Shown piece after piece: positions 21,081 to 24,274 of a stretch of 64,000 nt of DNA (positions within the stretch are counted from its first letter, which is position 1; every line of letters begins with the position of its first letter). The notes under the pieces were generated by a model. The model was given only the letters and a program-made list of their open reading frames with translations, was not told the DNA's origin and did not search any database. The stretch is taken from the NCBI GenBank assembly GCA_047495785.1, contig JBLDXI010000034.1, positions 434,001-498,000 of the forward strand, read 5' to 3'. A program made the translations under genes and the position numbers. Source of the stretch: Lepidodermella squamata (taxonomy: Eukaryota; Animalia; Gastrotricha).

Positions 21081-23900
21081 ATGGGAACAGCTGTTCTTGC
21101 TGTTTTCAGCGGTGAGCCAAATTTTTAATTAAAATTTTTTTTAAATTTTCATTTTAATTTTCTAAAAATTATAATGAAATTTCGGTTCTACGACTAAACC
21201 GCAGCGTCAATACAGATAGCGACAACTCCGCACGGACAGCACCGCAAAATGAATTTAAAATTAATTAATTAATAATTTTGGCAACGACAACTCAGCAAAA
21301 GTCAAATTCAATCGAATTCAATATTTTTATTCAATTAATTGAAATAATTGCTATCACGTCAACTCCGCAAATGACCATTTCAGATAACGAAAACTCCGCA
21401 AAATTAATTATTTAATTATCGAAAAGGAACCATTTCTAACCGTAAACCTAATGCTAACTCTGACCACCATCTTACTCTTACTATGAATCGCTGTATATTC
21501 ATCCAATCCTAGTAGCCTGGTGCGGAGTCGAAAGATTTATTAAGCAAGCAAAAATAAATAATTTGCGGGCTTGTCGTTGTCTGAAATAGTCATTTGCGGA
21601 GTTGACGGGAAAAAAATTATTTCAATTAATTGAATAAAAAATTTAAAATTGAATAAATTAGACGTTTGCGGAGTTGCCGTTAACAAAATAAGTAATTAAT
21701 TAGTTTTTAATTAATTTTGCGGAGTTTTCTGTGCGGAGTTGTCGCGACTGGAGTGTCAAGGGCGGCTTAGTCATAAGGCGGAAATTTCACCCTGCTCACT
21801 AATCTATTTTTTTTTATTTTCCAGGCAAATAATATGCCTAAATTATGTCTAAAATTCCTAAAATTTCTAGGCATACCTGAAATTTGAAAATTTTAATAAG
21901 AAAATTCAGATAATTTCAATTTTAATTTCAAAATAAAATTACAACCTTTAGCATCAATTCTAAAATTACCTATAATTAACGAGAAATTTCAATATTTTTT
22001 TCCTCAATTTTTGAATTTTATAAATATTTTAACAATTTTTTTGAAATTTTAATAGAATTTCAAAAGTGTAATTTTTTATATTTTATTTTCTCAGCTTTAT
22101 CGTTTCTGTCGCTAACTACTGCTTCCGGTCCCGATGGCATGTACATCGGCGTTATTACCGAAATGCCGAACCGCAATAACCCATACGCCTTCCGCGGCTT
22201 TTACACAGTCGCCCTGCCCGATAGTGGGTCACCCGTTTTCGCGAACCCGTTCACAGGCGGCCTGACGTGTGACCTCAATTTCGACGCCGCCTACACGCGC
22301 CAACCCGAGCACGGCTACTACGTCCAAAGCCTGTCGACCGACAGCGTGGCGAGTCTCAACTACCAATGCATATCCCCTACCTACAACCCAGCACCCGGTG
22401 AGGGGGTGAAAAATTTCGGCGGGCTGTATATGCGACGGTTCAGGGTTAATGAGGCGAAAACTGAGCAGCAATTAACGGCGAGTCCATGGAATCGGTGCAA
22501 AACCGGGTACACCCAGGTGAATTTCGAACTCAGGGGCGGTGTTGATTCGTCCGATTTCTCACGTCGGGACGATCAAATTTGGCTGATTGCCTGTTACATT
22601 AAGGTGACAAATGGCCAAATCGGCGGGTTCTTCTTGACCTCGTACTGGGATGGTGCGAATAACCGGTTAACAAGGTTCAACCCGACAACGGAGGACACGT
22701 CTTGCGGGTCGGGCTATCGACAGGCCCTTTTAACGACTGGGTTATCGTTTTACACCGGCAGGCAGTGCGGCGGAGATTCGTGCCCGGTTGCGATTCATTA
22801 TTGCTACCTGACCGATGCGGCACCCCTGGGCGCCCCTGGGTCAAAGGGTGCTAAGGGTGACATGGGTCCAGCCGGTGGTCTTGGAGTTACTGGTCCAAAG
22901 GGTGATCGCGGTTTTATTGGTTCGAAGGGTGACATGGGTGCTCCGGGTGCCACGGGGCCCGCCGGAGCACCCCAGGGGTCAAAGGGTGCAAAGGGTGATA
23001 AAGGTGATTTTTCCTAATTTCAACTTGAAATTGGTCATAAAATTCTTATTTCAGGTGACCGGCCTCAGGACGGCATCCCTGGCACCAACGGAACCAATGG
23101 GAACCCCGGTAGTCCAGGTTTCAAAGGTGAGCCGGGTAATACGGGCGGCAAGGGCGAACTCGGCTTGCCCGGATCACCCGGTCCTAAGGGTGACGCAGGT
23201 CCTAGAGGATCACTTGGTTTCAAGGGTGAAAAGGGTGAGCGTGCGTTTCAAGGTTCAAAGGGTGCTAAGGGTGATTCGGGTGCCAAGGGCCTCGACGGGG
23301 TGAAGGGTGATCCTGGCTACGACGGAATCGATGGTCTCAATGGGCTCCCGGGTCTGCCGGGTGCTATTGGCCCTGCTGGCAGGGGCCACAAGGGAGATTG
23401 TGGTAGGGACGGTATCGGCCTGCCAGGGCCCCCTGGGTTACCTGGTCGGCACGGAAGACACGGCCTTAAAGGTCAGAAAGGTGAACGAAACGGACCTAAA
23501 GGTGACAAAGGTAAATTCCTAAATTTTCCTATTATTTCCAGTGAAAATCTGATTTTTCTCACGGCTCCTAGGTGATTGTATGCAGGGCAATCCAGGTGAA
23601 CCAGGTAAAATTTCAATTTAATTTCAAAATTCAACAAATAAATTTTTTAAATTATTTTTCTGATTTTTAGGAATGAGAGGAAGACGCGGCAAAAGAGGAA
23701 GGCGTGGTTTTAAAGGCGAACCCGGCTTGACGATAGTCGGGCCACCTGGGCCCACTGGGCACCCTGGCCCTCCGTGCAAGGTCTCCGAGGAAACGCTGCG
23801 ATCTATGGTCGTCAAAATTCTAGACGATCTACTCGTCGAAGCTTCGAGTGAAGAGCAGGAAACTGGAGCGGAACTAGAAGATGATAAACTGTTCGCCTGA
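21081..23900 (+). CDS. Secreted short-chain collagen (about 552 aa) with an N-terminal MPEG1 P2-like cysteine-containing domain
   Basis: Exons 21081-21111, 22095-23003, 23055-23510, 23572-23604, 23671-23900. Signal peptide MGTAVLAVFSALSFLSLTTA; ~225-aa globular domain; interrupted Gly-X-Y; short C-terminal helix. Confidence 0.85.
21175..21789. mobile_element. Degenerate foldback element in collagen intron 1
   Basis: Imperfect inverted arms (TGAAATTTC...GACTAA.CCGC) with mirrored ACTCCGCAAA/TTTGCGGAGT sub-repeats. Confidence 0.65.
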
Positions 23901-24274
23901 TCTAGATCAAATCAATTCTTTCATTTTATTCGCAAATAAATGTACTTTATTTTTGGGAAATCGAAGCTTAAAATCCGAAAAATTTATTTACAATATTTTA
24001 AGCTTCGAATTTTTCGCCGACTTGACATCTTGAAAAATATTAATTTTTGAAATAAAATTATATATAATTATATAATAGCTTTTTTTATTTCACACGTGTT
24101 TTGCCGCTGGTCATCAGTACAACGGTTCAAGTCTCCCACAGCATTAAATATACGCACCCACGTTATAAGGCTTTTGTTCACAGCAAAAATACTACGACCA
24201 CAGGTGAATACTAAACAATTTTTCACTACAATGATTTTTTTATAATAGAACTTCAAAGGTCAGCTGAGGCGAAA

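Follow-up and report, generated by a model that had tools for sequence, protein, structure and literature searches.

A perforin-2 P2-like domain joined to a predicted secreted collagen in Lepidodermella squamata

Gene structure and collagen rod

The window, i.e. the whole stretch of 64,000 nucleotides of Lepidodermella squamata DNA that was analysed, contains a five-exon gene at positions 21081-23900 of the + strand, which encodes about 552 residues. All coordinates given below refer to the window, and all features lie on the + strand unless otherwise indicated. The four introns are all of the GT...AG type and in phase 1, with junction codons GCT, GGT, GGT and GGA; at the collagen junctions (introns 2-4) the interrupted codon is always one for Gly. 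Exon 1 (21081-21111) carries the ATG, 10 codons and the opening base of an Ala codon that intron 1 splits; this codon reads GCT after joining to exon 2, and a GT donor follows at 21112. The exon codes for the N-terminal half of a putative signal peptide, the remainder of which is found at the start of exon 2 (22095-22129) as a hydrophobic run ending in ...TTASG. Together they form a signal-peptide-like hydrophobic N-terminus (MGTAVLAVFS-A-LSFLSLTTASG), whose cleavage site was read by eye rather than by a predictor. A short first exon of this kind, or an acceptor located within the signal peptide, is also seen in two paralogs, and in one of them (C10-a) the short first exon is likewise in phase 1. 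Intron 1 (21112-22094) reaches a length of 983 bp because it harbours a MITE-like insertion of about 610 bp (21175-21789, no strand assigned), which is no part of the protein. The inverted arms of this insertion (184 nt each, 21219-21402 and 21562-21745) are 83% complementary, and copies up to 97% identical are present on at least 8 other contigs.

Exon 2 (22095-23003, AG acceptor at 22093-22094) has an open frame unbroken from 22097 to 23003. It contains a 221-residue domain of the P2 (MABP) type (22157-22819), supported by profile, hhalign, AlphaFold and VIA-align and hereafter called the head, followed in the same frame by the first 61 residues of the collagen region (22820-23003). It had been asked whether the domain and the collagen belong to one mRNA; as both are present in this single unbroken exon, their fusion is independent of splicing. 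The exons were translated, searched and counted one by one. The original prediction also held that the protein is devoid of a MACPF domain, and Pfam indeed gives no MACPF match in any exon. The genome has at least 23 MACPF matches; none of those listed is on the contig (C34) which carries the gene, and the best 10 of them are associated with other C-terminal domains and not with P2.

The Gly-X-Y character of the downstream region is confirmed by the Pfam collagen family PF01391, which matches exon 2 (33.7 bits, E 3.1e-8) and exon 3 (73.1 bits, E 1.6e-20) above the family cut-off of 27.2 bits, and exon 5 (E 5e-4) under it. In exon 2 the collagen region opens with APL, after which 15 Gly-X-Y triplets run without a break; one extra residue then precedes 4 further triplets. 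Exon 3 (23055-23510) adds 152 residues of collagen, among them one Cys; its Gly-X-Y pattern is broken several times, and the frame is maintained via split Gly codons. Exon 4 (23572-23604) is a collagen micro-exon of 33 nt (GDCMQGNPGEP), bounded by AG and GT sites and in phase 1 at either end, so that its omission in splicing would leave the frame intact. Exon 5 (23671-23900) encodes the end of the collagen (23671-23777), in which a basic cluster (RGRRGKRGRRG, 23673-23717) and, within GPPC, the last Cys are found, and then a C-terminal tail of 40 residues (23778-23900, stop at 23898-23900). An AATAAA polyadenylation-type signal was read from the sequence 35 nt past the stop (23935-23940). In total the collagen part amounts to about 260 residues of interrupted Gly-X-Y, which would span about 75 nm if fully helical. 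A comparable basic cluster (RGRRGRKG) is found in a metagenomic relative; of the four genes read to their 3' ends, two have such a cluster.

The tail is acidic (pI 4.05) and has the pattern of an amphipathic helix, with hydrophobic residues at i, i+3, i+4, i+7, i+8, i+11 and i+12, in agreement with the C-terminal helix originally proposed. It has no Pfam domain above threshold. The same helix pattern occurs right after the last Gly-X-Y in the paralogs C10-a and C10-b and in L005, and is thus common to four genes in two organisms. A genome search with a 45-residue C-terminal tail matched only itself: the likeness among paralogs is a common pattern and not a detectable homology.

Relationship of the head to the P2 domain of perforin-2

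The three pseudo-repeats of the head were found exactly as quoted in the original prediction (repeat 1, 22181-22375; repeat 2, 22406-22600; repeat 3, 22610-22810). An alignment of 12 sequences, built without vertebrate or other MPEG1 sequences, shows six invariant Cys, two in each repeat, from which we infer one disulfide per repeat. Repeat 3 contains an extra Cys pair besides the conserved one. HMMs made from single repeats pick up other repeats of the family with scores as high as 34 bits (E 1.6e-9), against a top score of about 11 bits among 1,080 shuffled decoys. Within the protein itself, the mutual matches of repeats 1 and 3 score 13.6-15.2 bits, and the degenerate repeat 2 reaches 4.5 bits.

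The kinship of this domain with the P2 (MABP-type) domain of perforin-2/MPEG1 was recovered by sequence profile, by profile-profile comparison and by predicted fold. A profile of six collagen-linked heads searched against the PDB has MPEG1 as its sole match (E 4e-4), as has a nine-sequence profile (E 9e-6). The six-head profile, from which MACPF-linked copies were left out, recovers a MACPF-linked P2 copy of the same genome (E 2e-5). When compared by hhalign with four MACPF-linked P2 regions of this genome, the head matches with 97.5% probability (E 5.6e-12) over 159 columns, colinearly through all three repeats. The head alone gave no match by direct Pfam scan or by direct phmmer against the PDB, and no usable match in the ESM Atlas; no Pfam model matches the P2 part, even in the MACPF+P2 proteins of the same genome. 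Word-indexed protein searches with the six-head profile, with a membrane P2 protein and with the P2 part of a MACPF+P2 protein gave only P0002 or no match. Exhaustive phmmer against 1.84 billion cluster representatives retrieved only two relatives, both metagenomic and about 30% identical.

As to the fold, AlphaFold gave an unusable model from the single sequence (pLDDT 29) and, with 12 sequences, a model of the head with pLDDT 85.4 and pTM 0.86. Comparison of an AlphaFold model by Foldseek had been proposed as a check, and the P2 domain of perforin-2 proved to be the only strong match: perforin-2/MPEG1 occupies 14 of the 15 top matches listed (ranks 1-17), with a best probability of 0.96-0.99 and a global TM-score of 0.25. 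By VIA-align, perforin-2 P2 is matched at Z 7.8-9.0, with an rmsd of 2.1-2.8 A over 105-112 of the 221 residues and 21% identity, the next family being at Z 4.3. In an unfiltered VIA-align search of 48,161 chains P2 again ranks first (Z 7.5), and only 12 chains are at Z >= 2; for the two comparisons together the rmsd is 2.1-2.9 A. The match of the predicted model is limited to the core, about half of its length. In the VIA-align alignment (chain range 376-515) repeats 2-3 fall on MPEG1 repeats 1-2, and phmmer of a MACPF+P2 protein of the same genome places its repeats likewise; the register of the repeats relative to vertebrate P2 is therefore ambiguous. Taken with the profile results, the modelled fold supports the N-terminal domain as a true relative of perforin-2 P2.

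The layout, with Gly-X-Y exons coming after a P2 head, is not restricted to this gene: we observed it in three paralogs (two on C10, one on C73) and in two genes of a metagenomic relative. The length of the collagen part differs greatly among paralogs. In all paralog pairs pN is lower than pS, which is only a weak sign of constraint since dS is saturated (1.7-3.0). The same genome uses P2 as an extracellular module in a receptor kinase, in a single-pass membrane protein and in a Sushi-containing protein.

Possible functions of the protein

The gene is intact. On balance we consider it probable that it specifies a secreted P2-headed collagen which acts as a trimeric, multivalent extracellular binding protein. 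After removal of the signal peptide, each chain would present one P2 domain with a three-repeat beta-rich fold at its N-terminus. Three chains may register through the C-terminal helix and the preceding Cys, the collagen would then zip into a triple helix, and three P2 heads would cluster at the far, N-terminal end. The result would be a multivalent binding protein resembling a collectin, a ficolin or C1q turned end for end, whose heads could bind a protein, a glycan or another surface. This trimeric, collectin-like picture, drawn from the collagen and from the conserved C-terminal helix pattern, is plausible. Through its Arg/Lys-rich stretch close to the C-terminus the rod could be held on polyanions; alternatively this stretch may be a convertase site, the helix being cut off after assembly.

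The principal alternative is that of a structural matrix collagen, where the P2 head would be a non-collagenous domain for matrix assembly or spacing, with no role in recognition or defence. N-terminal globular domains are common in purely structural collagens, and parallels exist in the FACIT collagens and in the N-propeptides of collagens V/XI. The great variation in collagen length among paralogs, the Cys at the collagen ends together with the putative C-terminal registration helix, and a head without lipid-binding hairpin (see below) are all consistent with such a role, and nothing ties the gene to infection. However, the only P2 carriers of known function are immune pore-formers, and in the same genome P2 makes up the ectodomains of a receptor kinase and of small membrane proteins, which points to a module for ligand binding. 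The rod is moreover short and much interrupted, and the family is small and lineage-restricted. We regard a purely structural role as possible but rather unlikely.

More tentatively, and with some doubt on our part, the binding reading can be extended to defence. In this lineage P2, once freed from the pore-former, would then serve generally for extracellular recognition; the P2-collagens would form a novel class of soluble trimeric pattern-recognition "defence collagens" with N-terminal heads, and they might make up one system with the P2-ectodomain receptor kinases and the P2 membrane proteins.

The original prediction envisaged a membrane-recognition protein, and this part of it was not supported. 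The P2 domain of perforin-2 binds phosphatidylserine, cardiolipin, E. coli lipids and LPS (PMC6989145, PMC6753088). Given the solid homology of the head with P2 and the strongly basic collagen stretch close to the C-terminus, binding of negatively charged membranes in the manner of perforin-2 could be envisaged here also. In perforin-2, however, lipid binding requires a long basic hairpin inserted in one of the repeats, and its deletion abolishes binding (PMC6989145). We searched the head for an extended basic beta-hairpin of this kind, with a hydrophobic tip, and found no insertion in any repeat: 31-32 residues separate the paired Cys in all three, the hairpin repeat of human MPEG1 being clearly longer (roughly 55 residues, as estimated from a printed alignment). 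The charge also differs. The head has a pI of 6.1 and the collagen-linked heads span 4.7-6.3, i.e. they are acidic to neutral, whereas perforin-2 P2 is basic. With the hairpin missing and the head acidic, the tested lipid-binding function of P2 is not transferable to this protein, and the ligand is probably not an anionic membrane lipid bound in the style of perforin-2. A membrane-recognition collagen is accordingly an improbable reading.

That the locus is non-functional or mis-modelled, being a decaying paralog or having its P2 and collagen exons in separate transcripts, is highly improbable: no transcript-derived copy of the protein was found by exhaustive search of the 1.84 billion cluster representatives, but P2 and 61 collagen-region residues lie within one open exon, the five open exons have canonical sites and matching phases and are followed by a poly(A) signal, the layout recurs in five other genes from two organisms, the position of the signal-peptide intron is conserved, and pN is lower than pS.

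Comparison with known systems

The P2-collagen architecture was not found in the literature or in family libraries, and no paper describing it was retrieved, in accordance with the original remark that it was not recognised from described proteins. To our knowledge, P2 has been described only as a membrane-targeting accessory domain of perforin-2, and we know of no recognition of it as a known fold before the structures of 2019-2020. Its presence at the head of a conserved small collagen family shows that P2 is an independent, portable extracellular module, which occurs here without MACPF and without the lipid-binding hairpin. Should the heads prove to recognise microbial or cellular ligands, the protein would represent a defence collagen of a new type and would give a hint to a role of the P2 core, distinct from that of the hairpin, in perforin-2. 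If the protein is only structural, it would still enlarge the collagen repertoire by a new non-collagenous domain.

Among other folds, the MABP domain of MVB12B (3TOW) and the beta-prism or APC-beta accessory domains of other MACPF proteins (2QP2, 5OUO, 7PLN), all of them threefold beta-rich accessory modules, show a weak likeness to the head (Z 3.2-4.0). None of the four has sequence similarity to it, and their Z scores are far under that of perforin-2 P2.

The other P2 proteins of the genome are distributed as follows: MACPF+P2 proteins on C14 and C30, the receptor kinase and the single-pass membrane protein on C29/C46, and the Sushi-containing protein on C46. They have the same three-repeat domain, which aligns colinearly with the collagen-linked head, but they are membrane-anchored, linked to a pore-former or multidomain, and collagen is absent from all of them. 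Of the MACPF-linked P2 copies, the three in tandem on C14 have, within repeat 2, a Cys-rich insertion that is missing from the collagen heads, and, unlike these heads, they are basic (pI 8.1-8.4, computed for L035 and L036); the MACPF-linked copy of C30 (L021) has a pI of 5.9.

With perforin-2 P2 itself (e.g. PDB 6SB1, 6SB4 and 6U2K) the head shares the organization in three pseudo-repeats and, in each repeat, an FGG-aromatic start, an NPxT...C-x-GY turn, a closing hydrophobic-x-Cys and one conserved Cys pair. It differs from perforin-2 P2 by the extra Cys pair in repeat 3 and by having no attached MACPF, EGF-like linker, C-terminal tail or transmembrane helix; the hairpin that it lacks is, in perforin-2, hyper-extended and disulfide-braced.

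The overall organization has features in common with that of the defence collagens (collectins, ficolins and C1q). These are secreted, as the present protein is predicted to be, and here too a collagen stalk of moderate, interrupted length would gather three globular heads, of a type tied to innate immunity. The heads of defence collagens are C-type lectin, fibrinogen-like or gC1q domains and are C-terminal, whereas in the present protein the sole globular domain is P2 and is N-terminal, and the putative trimerising helix, after which no further element follows, forms the very C-terminus.

Gene structure and repeats of the head

The gene at 21081-23900 of the window (plus strand) lies in eukaryotic DNA, with short GT-AG introns and neighbours of animal type (NB-ARC/ankyrin, ANF-receptor and Cys-loop channel genes). 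Five plus-strand exons were read from the sequence: 21081-21111, 22095-23003, 23055-23510, 23572-23604 and 23671-23900. All introns are GT...AG and of phase 1, and an AATAAA is found 35 nt downstream of the stop. The codons split at the junctions are GCT, GGT, GGT and GGA, so that the three junctions of the collagen part each divide a Gly codon. Intron 1 owes its length (983 bp) solely to an inserted element (21175-21789), MITE-like and about 610 bp in size, whose 184-nt inverted arms are 83% complementary. Copies of this element are present on at least 8 other contigs; the closest (C32:2122978-2123577) is 97% identical, so that the element must have been mobile in the recent past.

The exons were translated, searched and counted one by one, searches and fold prediction being applied to separate exons or to the head; counted in this way the product has about 552 residues. 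It is composed of a signal-peptide-like N-terminus, a Cys-containing domain of 221 residues (the head; 22157-22819, plus strand), a collagen rod of about 260 residues of Gly-X-Y with interruptions, and an acidic tail of 40 residues (pI 4.05) with an amphipathic helix. Pfam Collagen was confirmed in exons 2 and 3; the Gly-X-Y region and short C-terminal helix originally described are both present. The head and the first 61 residues of the collagen region are encoded by a single uninterrupted exon; the predicted fusion of a P2-like domain to a collagen therefore stands independently of splice prediction. As originally noted, the gene has no MACPF match, and among the genome's listed MACPF matches none falls on the contig of the window.

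The three pseudo-repeats originally described are present in the sequence exactly as quoted. In a 12-sequence alignment six Cys are invariant, two per repeat. HMMs of single repeats detect the other repeats with up to 34 bits (E 1.6e-9); among 1,080 shuffled decoys the top score is about 11 bits. In the protein of the window gene, a score of 13.6-15.2 bits links repeats 1 and 3 in either direction, and repeat 2 has a degenerate sequence.

Homology of the head to the P2 domain of perforin-2

Used alone, the head has no match in Pfam, PDB or ESM Atlas. An exhaustive phmmer search of 1.84 billion representatives retrieved only two relatives, about 30% identical and both on metagenome contigs, and no transcript-derived copy. 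Three paralogs are present in the same genome, two in tandem on contig C10 and one on C73. Searched against the PDB, the profile of these six heads matches MPEG1 chains and nothing else (E 4e-4), as it does after addition of three further copies from the same genome (E 9e-6); the nine-sequence profile marks the FGG...NPxTxxxSCPxGY units in all three MPEG1 repeats, the third at an insignificant score only. The six-head profile also detects a MACPF-linked copy of the same genome (E 2e-5), which was not included in its construction. With hhalign, the six collagen-linked heads align to the domains that follow MACPF in four perforin-like genes with 97.5% probability (E 5.6e-12), over 159 colinear columns spanning all three repeats.

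Predicted structure points in the same direction. From the 12-sequence alignment, without templates, AlphaFold gave a model of the head with a mean pLDDT of 85.4 and a pTM of 0.86; a single-sequence run gave no usable model. Provided that the AlphaFold2 weights are older than the MPEG1 structures, which became available in 2019-2020, the model does not merely reproduce these. Of the 15 top rows that Foldseek listed for the PDB (ranks 1-17), 14 are perforin-2/MPEG1, the best match having E 3e-4 and probability 0.96-0.99, with a TM of only 0.25. On this list VIA-align gives Z 7.8-9.0 for P2 (rmsd 2.1-2.8 A, 105-112 residues, 21% identity), the runner-up family being the PCSK9 C-terminal domain (Z 4.3). 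When 48,161 representative chains were scanned independently, the crystal structure of mouse P2 came out on top (Z 7.5). No more than 12 chains have a Z of 2 or above, and most of the weaker matches (Z 3.2-4.0) are either MVB12B MABP or accessory domains from other MACPF proteins. The predicted likeness to MPEG1 P2 is therefore upheld by profiles and structure comparison alike, and we conclude from sequence and modelling that the head truly belongs to the P2 (MABP-type) domain, as a divergent member.

The superposition covers only about half of the head model, and the VIA chain range (376-515) corresponds to MPEG1 repeats 1-2 only. With phmmer, repeats 2-3 of a MACPF+P2 protein of the same genome, with a Cys-rich insertion in repeat 2, align to MPEG1 repeats 1-2 with the hairpin. 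Since both methods reach only MPEG1 repeats 1-2, the repeat register is ambiguous: the head could be colinear with vertebrate P2 or, the fold being pseudo-symmetric, displaced by a single repeat.

P2-collagens and other P2 proteins

In all three paralogs, and in the two metagenomic genes, the P2 head runs on into Gly-X-Y exons. These two genes share one of their source samples, and thus probably belong to a single other organism. The window gene and the C10 paralogs have in common a short first exon of phase 1 or, failing that, an acceptor within the signal peptide. In all paralog pairs pN is lower than pS, dS being saturated. An amphipathic helix directly follows the last triplet, with a Cys nearby, in the four genes out of four whose 3' ends were read; they share the hydrophobic pattern i, i+3, i+4, i+7, i+8, i+11, i+12, and homology of the tails is not detectable by search. 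A similar helix directly follows the last Gly-X-Y of a small collagen neighbouring the metagenomic gene (L005 13270-13683), so that collagens of these animals may use such a helix generally for registration. A furin-type proprotein convertase gene (Peptidase_S8 and P_proprotein; L005 4062-6062, L041 4091-6061) is located upstream of the metagenomic P2-collagen gene, at a distance of about 4 kb. Both metagenomic relatives have an R-x-R-R site just ahead of the head (RARRH, RNRRH), which the window protein does not have.

P2 was also found at other sites of the genome, in addition to the four P2-collagens. Four MACPF genes carry it: three in tandem (L035, L036 and L037; G000:C14:334-346 kb), with a long Cys-rich insertion in P2 repeat 2, and one perforin-like gene, MACPF followed by P2, on the minus strand of C30 (L021; G000:C30:653504-656881). 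The latter has an in-frame TGA between the frames L021 2401-3258 and 1450-2397, and may be a pseudogene, contain an unrecognised intron or be read through. Two more proteins are each encoded by a pair of near-identical loci, one on C29 and one on C46. L033/L034 (C46:446686-450249, C29:3813956-3817486) are open frames of 692 residues with P2 ectodomain, transmembrane helix and tyrosine-kinase-like domain, and L019/L020 (C29, C46) encode a single-pass protein of about 326 residues with signal peptide, P2 and transmembrane helix. A 917-residue open frame (L022; G000:C46:1797904-1801047) represents a further architecture, with a DUF7587-like region, a Sushi repeat and a C-terminal two-repeat P2-like domain. 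Several MACPF genes on C7 (L006, L010, L012) end instead in three copies of a non-P2 Cys-rich repeat of about 60 residues (CRPGYSLLFCG...CYASCGKF). None of the Pfam models matched the P2 part, MACPF+P2 proteins included, and a literature search yielded no relevant paper that brings together MPEG1, MABP and collagen. We rate the finding as a known domain on a known scaffold, in a conserved combination so far undescribed.

Lipid-binding hairpin and proposed working

Perforin-2 binds negatively charged lipids via a basic hairpin, hyper-extended and braced by a disulfide, which forms an insertion in one repeat and whose deletion abolishes binding (PMC6989145; PMC6753088; review PMC7593815). The window head does not have it: in each repeat 31-32 residues separate the paired Cys, with no additional Cys there. 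The long Cys-rich insertion of the three tandem MACPF-linked copies is absent from the collagen heads; their pI is 4.7-6.3, compared to 8.1-8.4 for these three copies and 5.9 for the fourth (C30). With phmmer the insertion aligns to that part of human MPEG1 repeat 1 which holds the lipid-binding hairpin; either lineages may thus differ in which repeat bears the hairpin, or the register is displaced by one repeat. Given these differences, the sole experimentally known function of P2 is not transferable to the collagen heads. Judged from sequence, the lost hairpin and acidic charge argue against lipid binding in the manner of perforin-2, and the membrane recognition originally proposed from MPEG1 is not supported.

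Chief among the alternatives is a collagen of purely structural role whose non-collagenous end is of P2 type, in keeping with a head that has no hairpin; the presence of P2 on receptor kinase and membrane proteins argues for the head as a ligand-binding module, and we consider the structural explanation rather unlikely. In a ligand-binding P2-collagen, we infer that the C-terminal helices and Cys would bring three chains into register, the collagen would then zip up, and three P2 heads would be displayed together at the N-terminal end. The RGRRGKRGRRG stretch (23673-23717), which has a counterpart in one relative and none in the C10 paralogs, is a candidate polyanion-binding site within the collagen helix or, alternatively, a candidate convertase site shedding the C-terminal helix. 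Such a trimer would share the principle of collectins, ficolins and C1q, but with reversed polarity.
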